The translations under genes and the position numbers were made by a program. A stretch of 64,000 bases of DNA from Orbicella franksi (lineage: Eukaryota): NCBI GenBank assembly GCA_964199315.1, contig OZ116700.1, forward strand, positions 15,934,001 to 15,998,000. The letters run 5' to 3'. Under the pieces are notes generated by a model. That model saw nothing but the letters and a program-made list of their open reading frames with translations. It was not told where the DNA came from and searched no databases. Shown here one piece after another: positions 1,145-17,250 of this stretch. Within the stretch, counting starts at the first letter, position 1, and every line of letters starts with the position of its first letter.

Positions 1145-4100
1145 ATGGTGCGGCCAAAGAAAAAGAAAAGGTTATCAAAAGCAGATTGGAAAAGTATTAG
1201 GAAGGCAAGGGGAGAAAAGTTAGCTGCCACAAGGGGTGTAGGAGCAGGCAGCAGAAAGAAGTTTATGCTCCCTGCAAAATGGAAAGAGAGAAGTTAAAAA
1301 TCAGGAGGACACAAGCAAGTACAGTTTGAAAGCCCCGGTAAATCTGTGTACCAATCTCGGAAAGAAGTAGAGAGAGTGCTAGTGTCAAGAAATTTAAAGG
1401 ATTGTCTGAACAAAGGCTGTGCTACTTCAGAAGAGTCAAGTCAAGATGAATCAGCCGGCTCAGAATACATCCTGACAGATGAAGAAACTTCAAAAGTGGT
1501 CGCCTGCAGTATTAAGTGTGAAGAACAATCAAAGGCAATGGAGCGAAGATTCTTCGTCTGCGAGACAACATAGCTCACGGATTCAGTGAACCAAATCAAT
1601 GAAACTTCAAAGTGCTCAACAAAAGACTGCAACGGTAAGTAATTACACCGACAGCTGAAAATGGCAGCAGGACTTTTTAGGCTCGTATTTGTCTAAGATT
1701 GAAGTTATCACACTCACCGTACCTTAGTTCTTCAAACCAGTGTTATTATTTGTGAAATACAATATGTGATTGTAGTTCTCTCAATCAGGTAGTCAAAAGT
1801 ATATTTCGTTGAAATTAATTTTCTTGAGAATTTCTCACAAATGCTTTTCATGGCTAAGATTGTGTTTATTTTCCCCAAATCAGTCAGCTGTTCAATGGAT
1901 GTTTTATATTTCAGAAATGCACTAAACTTTGTTTTGTTTGTTTGAAAGGACTTTTTTGTGAAGTGAAGATGTCTTTGACTATTCCTTGTAAATGCCTAAG
2001 CCAATAACAAATGTTATGCTTGTAAAAATCTGTCCCAAACCAGCAAACCCTCAGGCATCAACAACTATTACAATAAACGCAAGTGTAGTCATTAAATTAT
2101 GAGCAATTTTTTTCTGAATGGTAATGTAAGCTTAAAGATATTTTTTCCTCTTATTTTCTATAGGTATTCTAGTAGTTACTTAAGTGGAAACTAGCGGTCT
2201 TGGAGGATCCTTGCAAGTGTCGTTTGCCTGCAGTAACTGTAGTATGTAAACAGTGAATTTCAATGGATCTGCTTTTGTTGAAGGATCAAGGAGAACAGTT
2301 GTAGGCCATGCACCGGCTGTGGCATTCTTTATTACCGGACATGGGTATGCAAAGTTTTCAAGGACATTGAAACAGTGTCTGGGGATCAGTTGCATTTCCA
2401 AAAATCCTCATTACGATACAATTAAACCGGTGTATCCACACATCACAGATATTCTGAATGAGATGTGCGAGGAAGAAAAGCAAAGAATGAAAGCAAAAGA
2501 GGAAGGAGAGTTGGGCAGTTGGGAGAGGGCTGTTGTCACATCAGATGGCATGAGGCATACACATGGTCATTTTAGTAAGAATGGGTCATTTACTGTAAAA
2601 AAATTATTTGACTGGGGGATTGTTCTAGTATGGACACAAGTGTATGCGGGGAAAAGATACTGTGGTGAACAAAGAGTTGTTTGAAGGAACTGCAAAGTCC
2701 ATGGAGGGGATTCTTGCAGAGGAATGTTACAAGCAAGCTGCAGATGAGGGTTGTAAAGTGGAAGTTGTGTGGCAAGATGGTAACTCCAGTGCTGCAAAGG
2801 CCATCAGACAGTACCATCCAGATGGCAAAGTGTTCAAGTGTGGAGGACATGTTGGCAGAGCCCACACCAACTAGTTGACAGACCAAGAAGAAGGAATTCT
2901 CAGCAGACATAAAGAGAAAATACAAAGATATTTTTCCTCTTGTGTCGTGGTTGAAATGCAAATGTGATCGATATAAGGCTGGTTGTGGTTGTCTGAGTGA
3001 TAGTTTTTTGACAAGTACTCGTGTTAGCCACTTCTGTTGTCTGCAGCAATGTGAAGATTCCCAAAAGTATGCTCGGCGAATGAGAGCTCTTGGTGCAGAG
3101 ATATTCATGAATAGGACGAAGGCGAATCTTGGGGATTCCATGAAAACATTGTCTGTTCTTGCATGAGATGTGATGAGGATGAGGAGATCCAGCATGAAGA
3201 TCAGGCCTACAAGACGAAGGCTAAGCTAACATGTGATTTCCACCAGATGGTGTATCGTTTGGAATGTGAATGCCGTGCAGGAGATGCTGACAATGTCATC
3301 CACCCTACCATGAGTAGAGGTCACTCCAACCTCTGCGAAGCCCACTTCAGTGTCCTGCCAGATTTCTGAGCTAAGGATCAGAATCTTTGGAGGTAAGAAT
3401 TATTTAATCGTATCTGTAGGAAGATGCTCCATTGTTATAATTCTCTGTTTGCCTAATTTTGCTATATGATCTTGTTGAAATTATATTTTTTGTTGTAGGC
3501 ATGCATGCCAATTGGTTGCACTGAAATGAGTCCACAGAAGTAAAAATAAGTTCACTTAGATATTAGAATCTTATCTTACACATTTGCGGTTCCAGAAAAT
3601 TCATTAGAAATTCTCAGGTGGAAAGGGGGGTTCTCAAAAGTCAAAACTTTTAAAGGGAAGTATGAATCTAAAATTGAATGTTCAGAGGGGTGGGGGTTTC
3701 AAATAAAACCTTCCATTGTTGGGGGGTATGGATATTTCTTGGAACAACACAATTGGAAAAGGCTGGAAAAAAAGTAAAGGGTTTCCTGTTATTGGACTGG
3801 TAGTTTCTTTTCAATTACACTACACGACTTTGACAAATTGTGGGTTTTGCCAAGGGAACATGACGTGGTGCTATGAAGCCCGTGGCAAGTCTTACCAATG
3901 GATAATCGACCTGTATGACAGACTTCAGTTGCCAGTCATACCATCCATCACAGAGAGAAGTTGAAGAATGCATGATGGAAATAGAAAAGGGGAGAACAGA
4001 CCCCAAAAAGATCAGAATTCAGATGAAGGTGGCCAGAGCAGAGGAGCAGAAGGCAAGGAAGAAATGGGTAAAAAGGCAAGCAGTCCCACACACATACAGA

Positions 4101-4290
4101 TAATGATAATGATGATGATGGAGACAATGAAGAAGACCCCAACCTGGTAACTGCAGCAAGACAAGTCATTGGTGTGGCAGAGCTAAGTGATGGAACTCGA
4201 ACCCTCATCAGTGGGAGAACCTGTAAGTGTGGATCCAGACAACATCAAAGGACAACACATTCAGCCTGTCCTTTAAACAAAAGAAGAAAG
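1145..4290 (+). pseudogene. Kolobok-type (Mutator-like fold) DDE transposase pseudogene, spliced
   Basis: Exons about 1145-1634, 2164-3392 and 3780-4290 with GT/AG ends. Motifs AVVTSDG..HTHGHFSKNG, FEGTAKSMEG, VWQDGNSS, CGGHVGRAH, GHSNLCEAHFS and C-terminal CKCGSRQHQRTTHSACP. Several stops and frameshifts. Confidence 0.85.
3584..3752. repeat. Short degenerate MITE-like repeat in transposase intron
   Basis: Ends TTGCGGTTCCAGAAAA and TTCTTGGAACAACACAA are imperfect inverted repeats around about 170 bp of non-coding DNA. Confidence 0.4.
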
Positions 4291-4905
4291 AAAGAAATTT
4301 CAATGAACACTGTACTCCTGTATGATTGGCATGGAGCTGTTATTCATTAAGTTGTAAGTTTCTTATGTACAACCTTTCTGGAATTGACAATAATTTTCAA
4401 CTTATTTATAAGTCATAGAGGTTGCATGTTGGCAGAAATTGGTCATCTATTTAGAAACTAAAAGAACCATTGACCAGTGTAATGAAAAGTACCAAGGGCC
4501 TGTTTAATTACATGAGGCCTGTATGGATGCTAGCCTGGGTAAGGCCTCCATCTAAGCATTTACATCAAGCCATCACTGTTTGGTTATCTCACCCTTGAAT
4601 TGGCCCTGAGCTATGAAGGTTTAAAAAGCTGTTAGCAGTCTGGAATATCCCAATATATTAGGACAGCCGTGACTCGCATTTGAACCAATGAGAATTCGCG
4701 TTGCGATTCGAGTGTCACGTGTCAAAACAAAGCAGTAGTTCCAAGATGGCGGACGAAGGGAGATTCAGCGAGTCGTTCTGTCCATTTATATTATTCGAAC
4801 AGTAAGGTAAATAATTGTGACATTGTATATTTTGTATTAATTAAAGAAGGATTTGAAAGGCAACTCTGTTTTTGAGTTCTTTGAAAGGGTCTTGAAAGAG
4901 TTTAA

Positions 4906-5766
4906 AGTGCCTATAACCCCAAAACATTTTTTTCGCCTAATCAAATCTCTGTATGGAATTGGGAAAAATGTCGCAAAAATTTTTGAATTCGGTTAAAACC
5001 CAAATTTTTTACGAATTTTTAAAGTTGGCGCTGTTAAGAGCACGACCGAGCATTCGGGAGAATGGGACTAGTGACGTCATTCCAGGCCATTGCCAGCGTC
5101 GCTCCAGTATAAACTCTCACGTTGTTTTGTGTGTGGGATAGAGTACTGAGGGTTAGTTTTTCGTCAAAAGAACTGTTATTTGACTCAACAAAAGTTTGAA
5201 TATTCAAACGTACTTATAATGTCGTCCAGCGATTCTAGCTTGCATATCGACGTTTGTCAATCCAGGGAACATTACTTCGTAGTCCTCTTCTCGGAAATGC
5301 TTTGAGCACACTGCCGAGTACTTCGTGGGCTCCCAATGAGCACGCTTAGATTTTACGAAGTCAACCCATTGCTTTCTTCTTTTTCGCTTCTGCGGTTCAT
5401 CAGCCCCTTCAAAAGGTATGGGATGAAGCGAAATACCTTCTGCCTTACTTGGCTTATTATTACAGCCGAAAACAACGCATTTATCTGGCATTTTCAAGAT
5501 TTCTGACCTTCCGAAGCGAAGCAAACGCGGTTCCAAACAAGAAAGCGATCAATGGCCTGGAATGACGTCACAAGTTTCGCTATACCCAGACCCTTTTCAG
5601 TGACTCTGTGACTCGGTCGTGTTTTGAAAAAGTGCCATTTTTCCGATCTTTAAAAAATCATAAAAAATCGCGGTTTGAATCGAATTAAAAAATTTTTGCG
5701 ACATTTTCCCCAATTCCGTACAGAGATTTAATTAAGCGCAAAAAATTTTTTCGTGTTATAGGCACT
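4906..5766 (-). mobile_element. Non-autonomous Kolobok-type derivative (861 bp) retaining a THAP domain
   Basis: TTAA|AGTGCCTATAAC ... GTTATAGGCACT|TTAA. Imperfect inverted repeats of about 190-215 bp, both containing GTGACGTCATTCCAGGCCATTG. Confidence 0.85.
5204..5491 (-). CDS. THAP zinc-finger domain (truncated transposase N-terminus)
   Basis: MPDKCVVFGCNN...LHPIP...KQWVDFV...AVCSKHF: the C2CH THAP signature with conserved P, W and AVCSxHF. Confidence 0.9.
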   Translation of the reverse strand: MPDKCVVFGCNNKPSKAEGISLHPIPFEGADEPQKRKRRKQWVDFVKSKRAHWEPTKYSAVCSKHFREEDYEVMFPGLTNVDMQARIAGRHYKYV

Positions 5767-6809
5767 TTAAAGAAGGCTAGCAATTAGCTTGATCAAATCA
5801 CCACATCAGAATTAAAGGCGCAGCCAGCACGATTTAATAGAGCTTAAGAGAGACTACTTTGAAGAATTCTGGGTTTATTTCCGTTTTTGTTCCCTAATTA
5901 GTGGAATCGCATACCCTTACATATACTGAACTGATTTGACTTATATTGAACTGATTCGACTTAATCTTAATGAAGGGGGCGTTGTTCGATCAATCGAGGA
6001 TTGCAAGTACGTTTTGATGTTCCGCCATAACTCCGAAATTCAAAATGCGTTGCATTGGCCAATTTCAACTGTTATAAAGCGGGGAGAATTAACAAATAAC
6101 TCACTTTCTGGTTAATTTTCAAAACGATTCAAGCAAGAGAGACTTTTTTGCGACATACAAACACGTATGAAACCAGCAATGAATTTCTGTAACCCATAGC
6201 CCAAAAAGTGAAATATAATACAAGGGCAGGTATTTTTGTTTTAAGAAAATCCCACAAAGAATATTCAAGTAATTCAAAGATACGAATTTATTGAACACCA
6301 AAACTGGTACACTTTTCTATGTTTATGTTTCAACTTTTATGTCATTCAACTTTTATGTTCCACAGATATTCAAAACCATGCAATAAATTTGTAGTTGATT
6401 CAGTGTTAAAATTATTTACTGCGACCAAAAATATATATAAAAAAATGTGCACTGATAAACAACACCACTTCATTCTTTATATCACTACTTATTAAAACGA
6501 GAAACAGGAACAAAAACAAGTCATCCGTCCTTGCTCTCTTCTCTTTGTCCTTCATCTCTCTTCACTTCTTTGGCTTTTTTGTCTCACTGTGTTAACTGAA
6601 AATAAGAAACTTTTGATCACAACTAGAAAACATGTAAGGGTAGATGTTTTCAGTTTTCATTGATTGATAATCCAGCCTTTCACTAAATGGCTTTCTTATG
6701 ATTGCTTTTACTGATTTTCATATGTTCTGTGATGAAAAAAACTACAAATAATAAATAAGCAAGGAAATACATTGAATGTGTACAGACAAGTCTCTTTGTT
6801 TTTCTCAGG

Positions 6810-7383
6810 ATGAATCAGTCACAACTTACTGTAGTGTAGAAAGACTATTGGATAATAACAAAGAGGGGCAGGAGTAGTAATTGATGAAAGCAACCAACTC
6901 ATATCATTACAAGAATTACTTATAAGTACTAATTGGAAACCTGCACTTCCATCGTCTCAAGGCCCTCAACATCTGGCAGATGAGACCTTACGATGCCTTC
7001 AACCCTATCTGCAAATTCCTTTGTCACTTTTAAAACCCACATACATGGGATTACAGCCCCTCCACCAGTCTGTTTGTTTTTTTCCACTTCTGGGTGGTGG
7101 GCGGTTTTTTACTGACTGTTGGTTCACCAGTGACATGACTGTAACAAAGAAACACAAGCTCGTTAACCACGGAACAAGACTTGAAGATTTCCAGGGAAAT
7201 ATCAATTTTGATGTATGCCAATGTCAGTAAAAAATAGGTTTTCAAAAGAAAGATGACTGGCTAAAAATATTGAATAATGATGCAGAACTAAAGAAGAGAT
7301 CACCTCTTGGCAAGATCATCAGCGACTGGGGATTTTCCCATCCATATACAACAAAAAACTGTTCTCAGCATACTAACCCGTGA
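6810..7383 (+). pseudogene. Degenerate reading frame of unknown function inside the 4636-15996 element
   Basis: Acceptor TTTTCTCAG at 6809, then about 190 codons with one frameshift and one stop (...ISLQELLISTNWKPALP...DDWLKILNNDAELKKRSPLGKIISDWGFSHP). A possible first exon starts at AAGATGGCGGAC (4746). No homology recognised. Confidence 0.4.
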
Positions 7384-7921
7384 ACTGATTTGATTCGTCT
7401 CTCCTCGAGTAGCTGGACGAAAGTTTTATTAAGAAAATATTGGACACGGCCGAGAGGCTTTCCCACTACTTCTCTCACTTTGTATTCCATTCGCCTTGAT
7501 TTACTTTTCATGACCGTGTCCAATATTTCATCATCCAAAGCATGTGGCACTTTGCAGAGAAGTGCATAGGAATCTCTGGCCGTGTCTGCATCTTCCTGTT
7601 CCACTGTCACTGTGCAGCCAATGGGCAGCTTAATTCCAAACTTGTGGTACCTAAAATAGAATAGTCGTGGCTTACTATTGCAATTCTATTTTCAGAAAAC
7701 ATGAGTTTTAACCGAAAGATAACATCTGAAGTCTATGAAAGAGTGGTGCCTTACCCTTTAATCACACCATTCGTAATTTGTATCTCCACATCGCTGAATT
7801 CCTCGCCTTCTTCAAGGACACTGTGATCTAGTAGTACAAGGAAACATGCAAAGATCTATGCATTCGGTAGCACTGAATATTAACAAACAGGGAATAATTG
7901 TTTCTTACCTCGTTTCGCCAT
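7365..7921 (-). CDS. Three-exon HIRAN-like protein gene
   Basis: Exons 7921-7909, 7827-7755 and 7650-7365 splice in phase with GT/AG: MAKRDHSVLEE...VIKGYHKFGIKLPIGCTVTVEQE...RDSYALLC...GKPLGRVQYFLNKTFVQLL. This fits the xGYH...E..N..D.YA...VG.V HIRAN pattern. Confidence 0.6.
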
Positions 7922-8144
7922 ATTGTACCAAAATACTAAATAATTTAGCACGAATGCTACTGTGGCAATCCAGCAAGATGGCAAGATGCAACCTGAGTTT
8001 CCGCGACATTTTCCCGGCAGCAAATTTGGCCTTCTCATTGGCTTACAAACTAAGCTGTTGTCACATCTGGAATTGTGATTGGTTGAAATAACCGTATGTT
8101 TACATGCTGCGATAAGCGACATGCTCAAGTAGCCACATTTGAAA

Positions 8145-8843
8145 ATGGATTCAGAGGTAAATTATGCTGCCAACAACAAGAGAAATGCTTCAGACCAAGC
8201 GCACAAATCCAAGTAAGGATAAAAAGCTATAACTCATATTGCTTAACTACAACATCTAATTAGAGCGTAGCCCAATTGTACCACAGGAAAACTCAATTCA
8301 ACACTCATACCCCACGCGTCCTGCATCCAACACATCATTTCATTTCTGTCTATTTCACAGGCAAGACATAAATCAAGATAAAGGTCTAAAAAGGTCAAAA
8401 AAGGGAAAGGAGAACGTTACACTTAAACAAGACCCTCGCCAACATTCTAAAGTTTTGTACCAGCGACGCAAAGGCTTATTTCAATCGGGGTTTAAGCTAA
8501 ACAAAATGATTGGGGTAGAGGGTACTCATTGTAGTTCAAAACCAAAGAGAAAGGAGGTTTTTTGGAACAGGATCCTTACAAGAGGAATATTTGTCTGGCA
8601 AATTACACGGCACTGGTAAAGAAGAAACGCAAGGTAGATGTGGAGAAAATTGCGCAAACAGTGCAGTAGTTTGTCCACTAGAAGACACCTAGTCCAGCTG
8701 CTGGCCAAAGTACAGGTAGACTTTCAGCCATAGTTGGTAGAGCCAGATCTAAAAGATTTCTCGACATGCCCACCACAGGTCCAGTAAAAAAAGTATTGTT
8801 GGATAAACCAATACCAGTTGTTCTGAGTCAGGATAAGGGCTGA
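8145..8843 (+). pseudogene. Two-exon MADS-box (SRF-like) gene remnant
   Basis: Exon 8145-8212 joins exon from 8361 in phase 2. QRRKGLFQSGFKLNKMIGVE/VLIVVQNQRERRFFGTGSL aligns in register with the SRF MADS core KRKTGIMKKAYELSTLTGTQVLLLV...FATRKL after removing one extra G at 8521. Confidence 0.55.
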
Positions 8844-9439
8844 GTACAGGAAAAATAATTTCCATAGCTACAAGCCCCCTCCCCCCTTCCCCTTACCACC
8901 ACCCCCTAAAACCTTAAAATTCCAGGTAGAGTGAATGTCATGGGCACTGCTTAAAATTATTTCATCCCCATAGTCATCTGCATATAATGTTTTTATTATT
9001 GTTTCCTGAAACCTTGAAATAAGAAACCATAAATGGAACTTACTGGACTTTTGGTTTGGCTTGAGACGGCAAAGTAGTGAGAGTGGTTTAGTTTTGCTGC
9101 CCCCAGTTCAATCCCACACACATTAAACTCATCCTTTGCTATATCTGTTTTGTTATTTCGCATTGCAGTTCAAAATAGATTACACATGTTCTCTTGCACA
9201 ATCGACTTTTCTTGTTGAATTCCAGAAAACCTATCAGAAAACCAGATAGTGGCAAATTGTTCACAAGTTTATATAATGATTTACATTAATTTACTTGAGT
9301 GTTCTTTCATTATTTACATAAATGTACATTGCTAAACAGTGACAAAATACCTTCAATTTTCAAAGATCTTTCAAATAAAGTGTACAATCTTAGAATTGAT
9401 AACTTATATTCATGGCCCTCATTTAGAGAAGGAAAAATA

Positions 9440-10310
9440 CCGTATTTACCCGTGTATTAGTCGATCCCGTGTATAAGTCGACCCCCAATTTTTGAGGCCA
9501 AAAACTAGATTTTCTTAATTTCCAGGTAAGAATTTCTTGGAAAACTTATCTTGTATTTCTTAAAATTATCTTTCAGCTACCACAGATATGTAAACAAATC
9601 ACAGCATGTTTCAACGTGCAGTTTTAAAGCTTATTATGGCAGGTATACGAGCGTTTTACCCAGTTTAGCAACACATGTGCATGCAGACTTTTCGATGATA
9701 ATTTTTGTAAAATGCTCACAAAAATCAAATGTAAGGATTTCAAACAAGCCTTTTTAAGTGCGAAGAGATTAAAAGTGGCTTTATAAGACAGGCAAAACAC
9801 CAAAGAAGCTCACGACTTTCAGAACGACGCCATAAACTAAGTGCAAAGCGTGTGTTGGGAACTTGGTAGTCAAGCCTTGAAATCGGTCAAGTACTGGTAC
9901 AGAAGTCCTCGCACTCGTATCCTGCCGGGTTACCAAGCAGAGAAGTTTCAAGCGTGAAAGATATTTTCTCCGAGCGGCTTTACTACGGCTTTGTTTAGAG
10001 GAAAAATATTGGTTCTTTATGACGAAATTGAGCCAGTGAGTGTCTACAAGATTCAGGTTAAAATTTAACGGATAAATGTTGATGCATTTCAACTTGAAGC
10101 TCTGATATGGAGAGACAGATCGCTAAGCGAACGTACGTTGTAAACTGTGCTGCCGTTTATCACATGTTTGTTAACATCGAAAGACAATTATTATGCTAAT
10201 TGTTTGACTGGCGCTTGGATCTCAAGTTTTGACCCATGTATAAGTCGAGGGCAAATTTTTGGACTGATTTTTAGGTCTTGAAAGGTCGACTTATACACGG
10301 GAAAATACGG
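9440..10310. mobile_element. Tc1/mariner-pogo-type MITE (TA TSD)
   Basis: TA|CCGTATTTACCCGTGTAT ... ATACACGGGAAAATACGG|TA, with internal GTATAAGTCGA repeats at both ends. No transposase recognised. Confidence 0.8.
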
Positions 10311-10373
10311 TAGACTTTGTATTTGAAAGATCATTACTGTTCACTGTTAAATATAAATAAAGGACATGACCAT

Positions 10374-13300
10374 TCAAATGTCATTCATCTGTTTTGTGTT
10401 TTCCTGATTCTGCACGTTGAGTAGTTCTTCTTGCTGCTCAATCTCTTCACAGAGAGCAATAATGATTTCTTTCTTGGTGGATGCCAACTTCTTTTGGATG
10501 TTACCTAACTGCTCTGTATAAAATCTGATTGCTGACTCATCTGAAAATTTGGATACAAGGTTTTCAATCCTTTTGACTAAATCAGCTTTCTTCATGTTCT
10601 TTAGTTGAGATGCTACCTCCCTCTCTCCTTTAGTTACATGTAAAGGAGTCAAGGGCAGGTCTTCTCTTTGCTTTCCATTAAAGAGCACTTCCTTGAATAC
10701 CATTTCTCGGTTGGCAGAGGCTACTTCCGTGACATCCACAAGACTCGGGTCAAGAACCTTGCCATCAACAGATGCATGCGATTTCTCATCGAATGGTCTG
10801 CTCAAATACCTGTGGGTATATTGGGAGGGGAGTCAATGGAAGTTTATAGATTGACGACATAATAAGAAAGATGTAATGGATGACAGCAACTATTTTGAAA
10901 CGAGCCCTTTTCTATAGCACTGCAGGAAACACAAGGCAAACTTACTGTACTACAAAAGTTCCACTTCACTCTTCAAAATACACAGAATCCAATTTTGCAA
11001 AACAGGTTATTTACCTGACTTACTTACTACGTTAGTTAATTTTTTTTGAGCTAATGAATTGCTTTTTAAATTTTCATTTTGTCTTGGAGATAAGGGTAGG
11101 GGTAACCATGTGAAACAAAGAAACACTATTTTCTTTTGGCAGCAAACCCCGCATAACTGATAGGCTTGATCAATAACTATTCCAATTACTGGCTATGTGT
11201 GATGCAGATTGTCTGTAATACATGTCGTTATTAATATCTACAATCCAGGAACAACAAGGTCACCTTTTGCGTCGCAGTGTTACTCGCCAAGCCACAATTT
11301 CTTTACTGAGATCCTCCCTCCTCCTGGATAACTGGGCCTCATCTTTGGGATCGTTCATGCCAAACCATGAGAATGTCGTACCACGCAGCTGAAGTATAAA
11401 TCAATTGAAATAATGACCCTTAAGGAATAAAATTCTACAGAAATGTGTTTATTGACTGTGTTGTAATGTCATGGCCATTATGATTACAAACATTCACCTA
11501 GTCCTGCATCTCCATCATGAAAATCCACTTGACAGGGGATTATCTATAATGGACCGGGGCTACAACCACAACCACACAAAATGTAAAAATATGTCATTTT
11601 ACCTGATAGAAATGTTTGACATATTCCTGCAACAAGCTGCTGTGAATTAATACAATTTTATCACCATTATATTTAGAAAAAATACCTTAGTAAGTTGGTC
11701 ATGATTCCTAAATATTGCTAACCACTCTCTTGCGGTCATTGTTCTATTTTCCCAGCATTTTGAAGATTTGTTCACTTCCTCAAGTTGAGCATCAAGGCCT
11801 TCACCTTTAGATTGGTTTCCACTACTGCCACAGATTCGTGTTTCTCAATGAAATTCTTGAGGTCCACAGGGTACAGGGTACGATCACACCTACATGAGGG
11901 CAATAAGAAAGAAAATTTTGTAAAACAGTTATTTAATTATTGGATTGAGCACCCTGATGATTTGTAAATCACTATGTTGTTGAAATAATTGTTCTTTTGT
12001 TTTAAAAAAATTAAAGCAGTTATATTTATATGAACTTGATTTAAACGTACAGAAACCCAGACAGCAAACTCAGTAATGTTCTTTTCCGTGGGCGACATGA
12101 AGATTACAACTATTGAATGAAAATTTTTAGGCCAAAGAAAACTTATATCAACAGCTATCAACATAGCAAGGGACTATCTTGTATCACAGTTTCCTATCAT
12201 GTAACTCAATCAGCTGGTATTTGGAAGTGAAGGGCTTGAAACTGAACAGAGGAGCAAATCCTGACTGACCAGTGTTAACATAGGCACTGTTGTTTCTTCT
12301 GATGCCAACATGGTACATTCTAATTAATCCAATGTAGCGCCAAGTTTGCTCAAACAAGTAGTGGTAGTTGTGGCATTTGACACCTGGTAACCACTCATAT
12401 AGGTAGTCATTCACTGACAGAGGCAACTTCTTTCCCATTCTGTCCCGTACATATGGCAACAGCAATTCGCACCAGTTTCCTTTCTCCATGACATTAAGCA
12501 TGGTCATAGAATAATGGTGATTCTTGGCTCCCCTTGCATAGTTGAGGGCACTTTCAGATGTAAAACCAAGTTCTTTTGCCAAGCTGCTAATGAAGACATC
12601 CCAGTTGATATCAAAGAATACCCTCACCATGTTCATCTCCACATGGAGAGGCCCGATACGCAAAACAACCCAGTCAAACTCTCTAACACAAGCAACACTT
12701 TCTTCACCATTGTGGCATGCATTCAAGTGCTCATTCCATTCTTTTCCATAGAAGGAAACATTTTCAGCACCAGAGCCCTCCTTCTGGCCGCACTCAATAC
12801 AAATCAATGTGTCCTCTAAAATACTGACTGCAATAAGATAAGGAAGACCATCCATTGTAACTGTTAACCACTCCCAGGAATTAGGTCCATGAAATCCATA
12901 CCGAGTTACACGTGCAGTCTGACCAACCCGGCGCAGCACTTCAGTAACTGTCTTATGTGAGTTAGGATTCACAAAAACAGGATCAGAAACAGAAATTCTC
13001 ACAGCACCAGGTTGGTGGTTGGATGGGACGTGGCTCCATTCAATCAAACTCTCTTCATGCACTTTTTTTAGCTCAGGTTGCACATCGAAATCGCCAACAC
13101 TCATGACAACCTCATTTTCTTTGAATCTATACAAATACTTTTTTACTGGCTCCACAAGTGCCATACCTAGGACATCTTCATCAGTTAGCTTTCTCTCTGC
13201 TGCTTTTAGATCCACCCTTCATTCTTTGTTTACACACTTCCGTTTCTGTTTTGGCATAACCGTTTTACAGTTTGGACACACCCGGCTATTTTCTCTGATG

Positions 13301-15466
13301 TTAATTTCCTCCACTCGCAAATCAACATCATCCTTGAATGTCCCCCCTTCGGTCATCTGCTCTGAGACAACATCCTTCAAACATTCCTGAATCATGAGTT
13401 TGTTCTGAAATAAAACAAATAGACAATCATAATCCAAATAAGTTTGGAAATGTTTTTGCGTTCCAAAGAAATCATTCAGATCTGAGTGGACTGGAAGCTT
13501 CTGAAAACAATTTTTGTTTTTATTTTTTCTGTGTGTTGTGATTGCCCACAGGGAAATGAACATTGCATAAATAATTCTTACTGTTTTTTTGTTTATCATA
13601 GTAAATGCACAGTACATGAAGCATGTTTTTTTGGACAATAACATGGGATCCACAAGAATCACACAACAACCAGTTTTAAAATGGCACTTAACGTTACATC
13701 TATGGTAGTAATATGTTCTGATGATAATAAATCATACCTCTCTTCTGAGAAGCTCCTGCATCTCATCTGAGAATTGGAGTCCCAGCTGAAGCTTGTCGTG
13801 TAACATCTTGTCATCTTTGGCTTTGTTCAGATTGTCCTGCCAGCACCTAAAATTAAATTGTTTTTGGAATAATATTTTTAACGAAAAAACCTTTTCAGTC
13901 AGCATTCAAAATTCAATATCTGCATGGAGATAAAAGGCCATACTTTAAAGGAGACAAAAGGCCTACAATCTGCACTGTCACAGCTAAGAGCTAAGAGCTT
14001 GTCCATGTTAAATAAAATAATAATTTTAAACTCATAATAACAACAACAACTGTTGTTGTTGTTGTTATTATGAGTTTGCTTTTTTCCTATGAGCATAGAG
14101 GTAAGGGAAAAGAAATGGACTGCATGAAAAATAAAAAAAAATGTAATGCTTATTTGCTTCTCTTATGGTCAAAGGTGCCATTTAACACTATCTACCAGAA
14201 AATAAAAGGAGCTTTTCTTTTGTAAGCTAGTGGACCATACCCTAGCACACAATCAGTGATATAATTTACTATGAATGAAAATTGTCATTACAATGAACCT
14301 GGGAGCCAGATCACTTCTAATTTGTAGCGAACCCAGGGAGTTGACTTCAGCCTGGCATACACTGGTCACTACGCTCACCCTTGACTTCTGACCCACTTTC
14401 ACTTTCCATTTATGCTGGACAATCTGGTCATTGTCAATTGCCACCATGCAGTCACCAGGAGGAAATTCTTTTTGGTCTGATGCAAGGTCTCTGGTCCACA
14501 ACTTCAAAGTAGAGTAGGACCCACCAGGAAGGGCCTTTCCAAACATGTTAACTACCAGCTTTGAATTGCTGACAGCAAGAAGGCTAATGTTAGTCATAAA
14601 ACTAGGTGGTCCAACAAATGTCATACCATGGATATGGTATAAGTGTTCCAGGGCTAAACAACGTTGAAAATAGTTCTTCTCTTTGGAAGCTAGTCCCTCT
14701 ATGACTGATTTAATGATAGGGTTGCACCGTGAAAACCACTCTTCTGCATCAAAATTCTGCAACATTTCCAGCGCTTTGTACGTCTGGGCAAAGGAGTGGC
14801 AGTCCACCTGCAGCTTTGGTTTCTGCTCATGAATAATTCACTGAACAATATTGGCCTGCATATCCTCGGGTACCTTAGCTATGCAGTCACCCAGCTCATC
14901 CTCCTGAAGAACATAAACTCCCTTGAGGCTGTTCTGCAGAAGTTCCAACAGCTGTGCCTTAGGAATAACAGAGCATAGCTCCTGAAAAATAGCACACTGG
15001 TCTGTGTAGGGTACCTTGGTGATACAGTCGCTAATTGTAACCATAGACATGCAGTAAACTCTAGGAGGCATTTGGTCATCCTCATGTTCTGAGGCCGAGT
15101 CTGTGTCACTGCCATGTAAATGTTTGCCTTCCTTTTCGCCAACTCTACTCTTCTTCTCTTTGAGGGCCTGCCTCGCGCCACTTGGCATTTACAGGTGGCG
15201 CAGTCACCACTGTGTGGAGACCACAATTTTGCTTCTTGTGAACACTTGAACTTTCCCGCCAAATAGTCCTTGTTGCTGCATTTAACTCTGCATTTCATGC
15301 AAATAAATCTGGGGTGCACATTAGGTGAATCCACCAACACAGAGACATTCCAAATTTGTTTAACTTCGTCGGCGTACTTAGTGACGTCCTCTTTCCTCTC
15401 ATTTCCCTTTGTTTTTTCTCCACAAATGCAGCAAAGTGCCTCAAGCATTCGAATATGCTTTTCCAT
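10374..15466 (-). pseudogene. Spliced DDE transposase with N-terminal RAG1/Chapa-like zinc domain and Academ-like core
   Basis: Exons about 15466-14299, 13846-13738, 13404-12192, 11898-11690, 11390-11262 and 10812-10374. N-terminus H..ML..LCCICG...HPRFICMKC...WSPHSGDCATC...RGRPSK. Core IDND, TMDGLPY, RIGPLHVEMN, KGEGLDAQLEEVNK. One frameshift, two stops and one mutated donor. Confidence 0.75.
14028..14077. repeat. Perfect 23-bp palindrome in intron
   Basis: AAACTCATAATAACAACAACAAC - TGTT - GTTGTTGTTGTTATTATGAGTTT. Confidence 0.9.
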
Positions 15467-16034
15467 GTATTTACGAGAGAAAAATTGAAAACAACTGTCA
15501 TAAATATGAAGGAACGATGCATTATTCACGCCTTATAACAACAGCGGTTCAGTTACACTTGTAAGGCCTCAAATTCAAAAAGAGTTTACAAAATTTCGAC
15601 GTTGTTTACAACCGTGGAATTTGGCATGATGAAACTTTAACACCACTAGAACCAGTAAAAAATATACACAGCTCAATGAAAAATACACAAATACTAGAAA
15701 TAACGCGTACTCTTTACTAACCTTAATATTTCACCACAAAATCGCGTCTACATTGTTGCTTAACACCAAAAATACTCAATGATTGGAGGGCAATTCAGGT
15801 TCTCACTCTAACAAAATGGCCGTTTATTCTCCTTCTCAATGTTGGGTCACAAAAAGTCCCGGATAATGCTGGCTAGGCTCTATGCGAGACTGGAAACAAC
15901 ATAGCTTCTTCGTTCCCATGAAAGGTCCGCCATTTTCCCTGATATCAATAGCTTCGTGACGTCACAGCTGTCCTTATACTGGGATATTCCGGACTGGTTA
16001 GGGGGTAATTAGTTTGCCTTGTTTCCCAGGAATA

Positions 16035-17250
16035 TTACTGGAAAACACTAATGAAGGATGTAGTGGATGAATGCTTTCTCTTGAAAAAGATGTGTGAGAT
16101 CTGAGGATGTCCCTTACATGACTACATCGTGGAAAAATGCTATAAGGGCAAAAAGAAGAGCCACTTCAAAGTATTACAAAGATAAATCTGCACACAACTG
16201 GGAGGTTAAACAAAGGTGGCCTACGAAATTAATATAAACCTTTCTATGTACGCAGATGACCATCAGATTTATGAAGCAGGAAAGGATCTCGCAAATGTAA
16301 AGTCATCACTTAGCAGGAATGCAGAAAAAGCATCTAAATGGTATTGAGACAACATGCTCAAAGGTAACTATAGCAAATACAAAACCATGGCAATGCAGAA
16401 CAAAAGAGGGATAACAAATTCGACCACGAGTATTCAAGGCAACAGCATTGAGTCGACAGAGAAGCTTAACCTTTTAGGAGTGACGATAGATAGTAAGCTG
16501 AACTTAAGCCATCATATCAACGTGTGTAAAAAAGCAAGCCAAAAGGATCGGAGTCCTCATGAGACTGAAAAACCTGATACCAACAGAAACAAAGCTGCAA
16601 TCTTACCACACCTTACTTATTGCCACCTCACCTGGCACTTCTGCAAGGCTAGTGATAAGAGGAAGCTTGAGTGCATACAAGAGAGAGGACTCAGGGCAGT
16701 ATTTAAGGATAAACATTCTAGCTACAAGAAACTAATGGCAAAAGTAGACATACCATCATTGTACAACAGACGATTACAGTATATTGCTATCTTCATGTAT
16801 AAGATTAAGAATAAATTACTACCAAAGAGACTTTGGAATCTTTTCCAATTAGACGGTAGTTCATATTACTTAAGGAAACGAGAATTTGTTCTACCACAAT
16901 TCTCCTCAGCAACATATAGAAAACACTCACTTCGTTACCAGGGGCCCAAACTGTGGAATGATCTCACTCCCAGAAACAGAAATCTACCCTCTTTGAAGCA
17001 ATTTAAAAGCGTCATACGTAATGAGGATCTTACTGCTTTAACTGCTAATGTTGGTGACTGTCAAGGCTGCAACCTATGCCGAGAATGACTCTTCATTTAC
17101 ATAAGTTTTACGATTAATATATGTAATTTTAATATTTTAATAGGGTTTAAGATACATAATTTTAATATATTTGTAGTCTTTTTAGCTAAGTTAACAGTTG
17201 TAATTAGGTTTCTATATAGTGTATAAGTGCCCACAAATATTTTGTAATTC
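16035..17250 (+). mobile_element. CR1/L2-type non-LTR retrotransposon fragment (5'-truncated, internally deleted)
   Basis: EDVPYMTTSWKNAIRAKRRA linker, deletion near 16203, then MYADDHQ and KLNLLGVTIDSKLN and the C-terminal ORF 16354-17088, followed by an AT-rich 3' region. Confidence 0.85.

Follow-up and report, generated by a model that had tools for sequence, protein, structure and literature searches.

Animals have, by the textbook account, two MADS-box genes, SRF and MEF2. A 64,000-nucleotide stretch of contig OZ116700.1 from the coral Orbicella franksi (assembly GCA_964199315.1; this whole stretch is called the window below) raises the question of whether a further one exists, carried by a mobile element, and of what such a gene might do there. 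An earlier note, based on the letters of the window, had described positions 8145-8843 as a MADS-box-like gene inside an animal DNA transposon, readable after a correction of one nucleotide.

Gene structure and state of the window copy

The open reading frames place an ATG at 8145 and a TGA at 8841-8843 on the plus strand, in agreement with the position proposed earlier. The gene was found to be divided into two exons (Table 1). Splicing from 8212 to 8361 preserves the reading frame, and in the DNA alignment the coral-metagenome contig L001 keeps both the context of the exon-1 ATG and the donor. The same layout of a short first exon, an intron and a long second exon is present in the RefSeq model of the Nematostella relative P0038. 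Spliced reads across intron 1 were absent; the contigs from RNA-labelled runs follow the DNA collinearly, intron included, and a run of polyA raw reads contributed 0 reads at the locus.

Exon 2 is read in three frames, each piece of which can be aligned to the related proteins P0001 or P0002. The extra G at 8521 separates ...KMIGVE from VLIVVQNQRERRFFGTGSL..., while the intact homologues P0001 and P0003-P0008 read GA(E/D)VLIIVQNDRERRFYGTG without interruption in a single frame. The one-nucleotide correction suggested in the earlier note was therefore correct at this position, but it does not suffice, as a second break, the loss of two nucleotides after 8682, must also be repaired for the frame to reach 8843. 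At that point the contigs of two other runs, X15 and X16, have 'AC', and L001 and a further coral-metagenome contig, L003, also have two more bases. A third change in the window copy is an in-frame deletion of 24 nt. In the alignment of the window with L001 and L003 the extra base at 8521 is confined to the window; L003 is damaged by another +2 frameshift (TT) further upstream, and L001 by one TGA at a codon position of the other copies. Since the damage differs in kind and in site among the three, it points to independent decay of a gene that was once open. Intact relatives do exist, and their coding sequence runs through both 8521 and 8682. The stretch 8145-8843 is a decayed copy of a MADS-box gene, a dead pseudogene.

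Two introns were considered and rejected. An intron of 50 nt at 8522-8571 (GT..AG) in place of the frameshift is incompatible with relatives that code through the stretch, and an intron after 8632, apparently implied by the first reading of the sequence, falls in a part that is coding in the relatives, the window having instead the -2 frameshift after 8682.

Over 7700-9300, contigs of three other runs (X1, X15 and X16) match the window with 98.9-99.7% identity, and they seem to represent the same locus in related individuals or species. All three carry the break at 8521, and X15 and X16 are free of the one at 8682. Given that the 8521 break is shared at what is apparently one locus, it arose there long ago and is not a trait of the family. 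Run X1 (405 million letters) yielded a single 3.5-kb contig over 7700-9300 with a word depth of 132, four differences and both frameshifts; either this run is not shotgun DNA, or the broken version is present in many copies.

Table 1. Features of the MADS-box gene and of the transposon that carries it (window positions).
Feature	Position	Strand	Remarks
Left target-site duplication	4631..4635	.	GTTAG; same five bases at 15997-16001
Left terminal inverted repeat	4636..4657	+	CAGTCTGGAATATCCCAATATA...; 22 nt, 91% complementary to 15975-15996
Upstream divergent accessory gene, conserved ORF	7365..7610	-	81 aa piece; tblastn
MADS-box gene, exon 1	8145..8212	+	MDSEVNYAANNKRNASDQAHKS; 68 nt, phase 2; donor CAA/GTAAGG at 8212/8213
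Intron 1	8213..8360	+	Acceptor ...TTTCACAG/G at 8360/8361, conserved
MADS-box gene, exon 2	8361..8843	+	Three frames: 8362-8520 (ending ...YQRRKGLFQSGFKLNKMIGVE), 8522-8682 (reading VLIVVQNQRERRFFGTGSLQEEYL...) and 8685-8843 (TPSPAAGQSTGRLSAIVG...PVKKVLLDKPIPVVLSQDKG, stop 8841-8843); two breaks
MADS-like domain	8404..8596	+	Basic N-extension, DNA-binding helix, beta hairpin, short second helix
Break 1	8521	+	One extra G, +1 frameshift, mid-domain
Break 2	8682..8683	+	2 nt lost after 8682, -2 frameshift
Transposase gene pieces	10374..15529	-	10374-10805, 12184-13215, 13219-13662, 14253-14807, 14879-15529
Right terminal inverted repeat	15975..15996	-	91% complementary to left repeat
Right target-site duplication	15997..16001	.	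GTTAG

Homology to MADS-box domains

When the two pieces of the window domain were searched singly in Pfam and the PDB, no match was obtained. With the pieces joined by an X at the break, SRF-TF (PF00319) was the sole match among 24,736 Pfam families (E=0.016, 15.1 bits against a curated cut-off of 26 bits), spanning 8446-8548 of the window, and the best match among 177,635 PDB sequences was SRF (E=0.58). Across a scan of 64 kb such a likeness of the window alone is suggestive and non-significant. The MADS signal thus depends on the join or on the relatives, as the single pieces match nothing. The earlier note had counted about 45 residues aligned to SRF without gaps; the likeness stands, but the length does not, the window copy aligning over approximately 39 residues before one gap and P0001 over 55 residues ungapped.

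Relatives were collected by a word search that returned P0001 and P0002 and then eleven further proteins, from which a 13-member profile was built. P0001 alone matched SRF-TF at E=7e-5, and its PDB matches were limited to SRF, MCM1 and MEF2A; the PDB matches of the 13-member profile were all MADS proteins (18/18). An exhaustive phmmer search of 1.84 billion representatives returned 38 at E<=1e-3, including two ordinary plant-like MADS proteins and two spurious bacterial repeat proteins; P0033 and P0044 were dropped from the family as bacterial repeat proteins matched spuriously. The window copy and its close relatives, each taken alone, score 15-23 bits (21-22.6 bits for the close intact relatives) and remain under the SRF-TF cut-off, while 16 of the 17 more distant family members scanned exceed it with 27-40 bits.

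Searched against the PDB, a 38-member family profile matched SRF at 1.5e-13 (54 bits), MCM1 at 1.4e-12 (51 bits), 14 MEF2 sequences at 4e-9 to 1e-7 (35-40 bits) and SEPALLATA3 (SEP3) at 3.6e-5; the first match outside the MADS proteins was at 0.07. Together with the predicted fold described below, these profile matches confirm that the transposon-borne family is homologous to MADS-box domains. The profile and fold matches of the intact homologues, and a frameshift at 8521 that is specific to the locus and its orthologues, speak for the MADS-box assignment made in the earlier note.

By profile score and by its ...TG(a/t)xVL... signature, the box resembles the SRF/MCM1 type more closely than it does MEF2; the placement SRF/MCM1, MEF2, SEP3 is a ranking of profile scores, used here instead of a tree. 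Where the family has L(S/T)xxTG(a/t)xVLxxV, like the type I proteins SRF and MCM1, MEF2 and the plant type II proteins have LCDAE. MEF2, a type II MADS protein, shares the fold with the family and fills the top Foldseek rows, but it is the weaker match by sequence (35-40 bits), and the family has no MEF2 domain after the box. Most family members keep the R..(T/C)LSKR(R/K)xTLFKKA helix and a basic N-extension. In the coral lineage that includes the window the helix reads LYQRRKGLFQ(A/S)G, with YQRRKG in place of SKRRK (SKRKTG in SRF/MCM1) and a Gln aligned to SRF Lys163, a base-contacting lysine in the SRF-DNA structure. Through this Gln the DNA specificity may have shifted in the coral lineage. 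The best-conserved part of the domain is formed by the dimerisation strands (MTGADVLIIV). Some relatives begin at the conserved Met of MTGADV; these had the look of broken genes, but they are better explained by prokaryote-style gene calls that are blind to the upstream exon and intron.

Predicted fold and protein architecture

The family protein is about 170-210 aa long, with an SRF/MCM1-type MADS box in its N-terminal 60-70 residues. Residues 9-187 of P0006 were modelled with AlphaFold2 from an alignment of 38 family sequences and no templates. The model predicts a helix at 24-49, strands at 54-58 and 63-67 and a second helix at 70-76, with pLDDT of 91-96, and the remainder is mostly of low confidence with two short helices. 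In a Foldseek search against the PDB the matches ranked 1-46 were all MADS structures (MEF2, SRF, MCM1 and SEP3), with target-normalised TM scores of 0.54-0.72 and probabilities of 0.94-1.00. The predicted structure thus has the MADS arrangement of an N-extension, a long helix, an antiparallel two-stranded sheet and a short helix.

The basic N-extension, the long DNA-binding helix, the two-stranded sheet and the short second helix are all features of SRF and MCM1. The family differs from these proteins in its multicopy, transposon-encoded state, in its length and private tail, and in that no CArG association was found for it. The tail is predicted to be mostly disordered and contains conserved motifs that are private to the family, namely PLExTPSP, RVSAIVG and IPEPVRKLLxDKPIPVVL (PVRKLLxDKPxPVxL). 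A disordered tail with short conserved motifs is a common shape of a partner-docking region.

The host transposon

The element in the window is 11.4 kb long, ends in 22-nt inverted repeats (CAGTCTGGAATATCCC...) and has GTTAG on both sides. The likeness between its ends extends to about 4672, and the left repeat holds the dyad CCAATATATTAGG. The inverted-repeat sequence has two matches in the window, which are the two ends, against 0 expected, and the ends are homologous to those of L003 and L001. The L003 insertion covers 2480-16367, with homologous ends and the 5-bp target-site duplication (TSD) ATGCT, and the insertion L009 of the amphioxus Branchiostoma belcheri covers 3053-14772, with perfect 32-nt repeats (CAGCTCGGAATG...) and the TSD TCTAT. 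Three independent insertions (window, L003 and L009) have CAG...CTG inverted repeats and a 5-bp TSD. These repeats and duplications in the window, in a second coral lineage and in amphioxus, along with a conserved gene order, bear out the location inside an animal DNA transposon that had been proposed. Judging from its sequence, the L009 element appears to be young and may be active. Its site is an intron of a host gene that codes for 4911 aa with RCC1/PHR/ANAPC10 domains, and there are gene models for all three genes of the element (B. belcheri assembly v18h27; PMC7417228).

A small minus-strand gene, the plus-strand MADS gene and a minus-strand transposase follow one another in every locus that is long enough, i.e., in five coral-metagenome contigs (L001-L005), in Nematostella (L006) and in B. 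belcheri (L009); in L007 and L008 the order is visible in part. Protein identity amounts to 35-42% for Nematostella L006 and to 39% over 342 aa (E=2e-77) for L009. The MADS gene is a constant part of this cut-and-paste transposon, which is Chapaev-like. Its products are listed as 'uncharacterized protein LOC109487284 [Branchiostoma belcheri]' at NCBI for amphioxus and as 'uncharacterized protein LOC116601981' for Nematostella.

The upstream minus-strand gene occupies the same relative place in L001-L005, L007, L008 and L011, with 37-66% identity by tblastn, and its single ORF pieces gave no match in Pfam. A Nematostella ORF in the same relative place (L006 8933-9235, minus strand) resembles this gene by eye, and BLAST shows no link between them; it contains ...VSREDDNTFDKTAVKC..., similar to a HIRAN motif, and Pfam was without a match on single pieces.

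With regard to the transposase, the piece at 14879-15529 carries the RAG1 N-terminal (Chapa) zinc domain (Pfam RAG1_imp_bd, E=3.9e-6, 27.1 bits against a cut-off of 23.3), and in L001, L003-L005 and L009 the gene next to the MADS gene is annotated with the same Pfam family. All transposase pieces are collinear in one amphioxus gene model of 1078 aa (L009 9936-14485) and are conserved in Nematostella. The homologue of the 143-aa ORF at 10374-10805 (minus strand) is the C-terminal part of this amphioxus transposase, so that the element probably has three genes and not four. The 343-aa core piece had no match by sequence in Pfam or the PDB, and hence none to RAG1 or Transib. A stop codon at 13216-13218 splits the ORFs of 147 aa and 343 aa, where Nematostella has a continuous ORF of 360 aa. 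By sequence, the window transposase is probably broken as well.

According to PMC4411706, which cites Kapitonov and Jurka (Repbase Reports 2007 and 2008), Chapaev and Chapaev3 belong to the Transib superfamily, carry the Chapa domain and have been detected in lancelet and Nematostella. The element described here shares with them the Chapa zinc domain and the 5-bp target duplication, and it occurs in Nematostella and lancelet, the Chapaev genomes of PMC4411706. A sequence search of Pfam and the PDB detected no Transib/RAG1-type catalytic core, and the class of the element is assigned by the zinc domain and the TSD. A MADS gene is mentioned 0 times in PMC4411706.

Several smaller features were observed within the elements. 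At 4901-5771, inverted repeats of 124 nt (87% complementary) surround a THAP-domain ORF (5204-5536; Pfam E=4.7e-13), and together they have the look of a small element nested in the transposon's left arm. The interval from the MADS gene to the transposase tail contains, at 9438-10312, inverted repeats of 19-27 nt (93-100% complementary) that are separated by approximately 800 nt and possibly delimit a nested MITE. In L003-L005, the left arm of the element also holds a PAX/DDE_3 (Tc1/mariner-type) gene pair (L003 6330-7314, minus strand), probably a nested insertion, which would explain the greater length of these elements (13.9 kb). Finally, the subterminal regions (4660-4760 and 15880-15970 in the window, and the ends of L003 and L001) contain TGACGTCA (CRE-like) and (A/G)AAATGGCGG / AAGATGGCGGAC (YY1-like), which are conserved between the coral lineages and are likely promoter elements of the outward-lying genes.

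Selection on the MADS-box gene

Among the lineages represented by the window, L001 and L003, dN/dS was 0.15-0.17 for the box, compared with 0.15-0.45 for the tail, with dN of about 0.19 set against a saturated dS of about 1.0-1.3. Identity between the lineages was 68-70% in exon 2 and 38-53% in the intron. These values show the pattern of a gene under purifying selection which, by this measure, has been working for most of its history.

Possible role in transposition

Our preferred reading of the locus, to which we give a probability of roughly 60%, is that it holds the decayed copy of a two-exon MADS gene which is a fixed component of a Chapaev-like element, and that the product of this gene dimerises and binds DNA of the element as an accessory factor. 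MADS domains work as obligate dimers; they bind sites of dyad symmetry and bend the DNA, and strong bending is established for the dimers of SRF and MCM1. Because MADS domains are known as DNA-bending dimers of this kind, we infer that the protein may bind the element's own DNA together with the transposase. By analogy with known systems, it is probably an element-encoded, dimeric DNA-binding accessory factor.

The steps of such a mechanism can be outlined as follows. The protein would pair through its beta sheet, like other MADS proteins, and the dimer would bind element DNA, either at a candidate site formed by the dyad inside each inverted repeat or at the promoters of the element. Bound to the dyad, it could help the transposase to find, bend or pair the ends, while the tail motifs might recruit the transposase or a host partner. 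In corals, the dyad of the inverted repeats is TCCCAATATATTAGGA (CC-W9-GG), which occurs in 3 of 4 ends and has no further occurrence in the two elements; its spacing differs from that of the CArG box (CC-W6-GG). The dyad in the amphioxus repeats, TAGGCAGATTTGCCTA (TAGGCA...TGCCTA), is unrelated to it in sequence. Since the transposase must also bind the inverted repeats, a conserved dyad in them does not point specifically to the MADS protein. No enrichment of the canonical CArG box was found, with 2 occurrences in the window against 5.7 expected and with 1 and 0 in the two elements.

Separate DNA-binding proteins encoded by the element beside the transposase are known from PIF/Harbinger (a Myb-like protein) and from En/Spm (TnpA), and they serve as our working analogy, although their folds are unrelated to MADS. 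In RAG-type recombination, the host protein HMGB1 is an architectural DNA bender that aids RAG1/RAG2 and binds without sequence preference. The parallel we draw with it is that of a DNA bender which would assist a recombinase related to the wider group of the element's transposase; HMGB1, on the other hand, is host-encoded and sequence-nonspecific. Within its element, the MADS protein might thus be the equivalent of the Myb-like protein in PIF/Harbinger, of TnpA in En/Spm and of HMGB1 in the RAG system.

A more far-reaching version of this proposal can be put forward only tentatively, and we would not expect all of it to hold. According to it, the third MADS lineage of animals exists solely as a transposon gene, was acquired once, before the split of cnidarians and chordates or with passage between them, and encodes a dyad-binding, dimeric, DNA-bending factor whose tail motifs recruit the Chapa-domain transposase.

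It may also be asked whether the protein acts on the host. In that case it would bind CArG-like sites of the host or form inactive dimers with host SRF, and thereby shift host transcription to the element's advantage, for instance in germ-line or stem cells. A domain nearest to SRF/MCM1, with dimerisation strands as its most conserved part, would suit such a role, as would an element that is itself without canonical CArG enrichment. However, the base-contacting position is altered in corals, the tail motifs are private to the family and accompany the transposase across phyla, and our analysis gave no evidence for host targets. We thus regard action on the host as unlikely.

Somewhat less can be said for a gene with no role in transposition, that is, a host box of SRF type which an ancestral element captured once and which has since been carried along or kept for the benefit of the host. 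Host fragments are known to be captured by DNA transposons, damage is present in the window copy and in two others, and the contig depth in one run hints that the copy with both frameshifts may be common. On the other hand, the gene has a fixed position in the elements of corals, anemone and amphioxus and is retained in the young amphioxus copy with perfect repeats, and useless cargo is not expected to persist for so long in a mobile element. The dN/dS of about 0.16, measured over a saturated dS, also argues against such a passenger, which appears improbable.

That the stretch is non-coding or unrelated to MADS genes, with a GT at 8522 and an AG at 8570-8571 marking a frame-preserving intron of 50 nt, was conceivable as long as single pieces that match nothing and a joined copy with a non-significant E=0.016 over the 64-kb scan were considered, but it can practically be dismissed, given relatives that code straight through, and a profile, relatives above the threshold and a fold that all indicate MADS.

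A third MADS-box lineage in animals

The gene that we prefer to regard as an accessory component of its element belongs to a third, mobile, SRF-like MADS-box lineage in animals besides SRF and MEF2, which is multicopy in corals, a sea anemone and amphioxus. The lineage is annotated merely as 'uncharacterized' because it rides in a transposon. In the literature that we searched, neither Chapaev elements nor any animal transposon were described as carrying a MADS gene; Repbase Reports lay outside this search, and prior notice there is possible. Counts of MADS/SRF-TF genes in cnidarian and cephalochordate genomes will be inflated unless the transposon copies are recognised. The amphioxus copy, whose ends are perfect and whose genes are open, lends itself to assays of binding and transposition.

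With regard to transposon biology, the MADS box would join, as a new fold, the short list of DNA-binding accessory proteins encoded by eukaryotic cut-and-paste transposons, and the group to which the host element belongs bears on the origin of the RAG1 N-terminal region. Should the more far-reaching version of the proposal hold, the MADS protein would be to its element what HMGB1 is to RAG-type recombination, but encoded by the element itself, and the elements would be a source of MADS-binding sites strewn through the genomes of their hosts.
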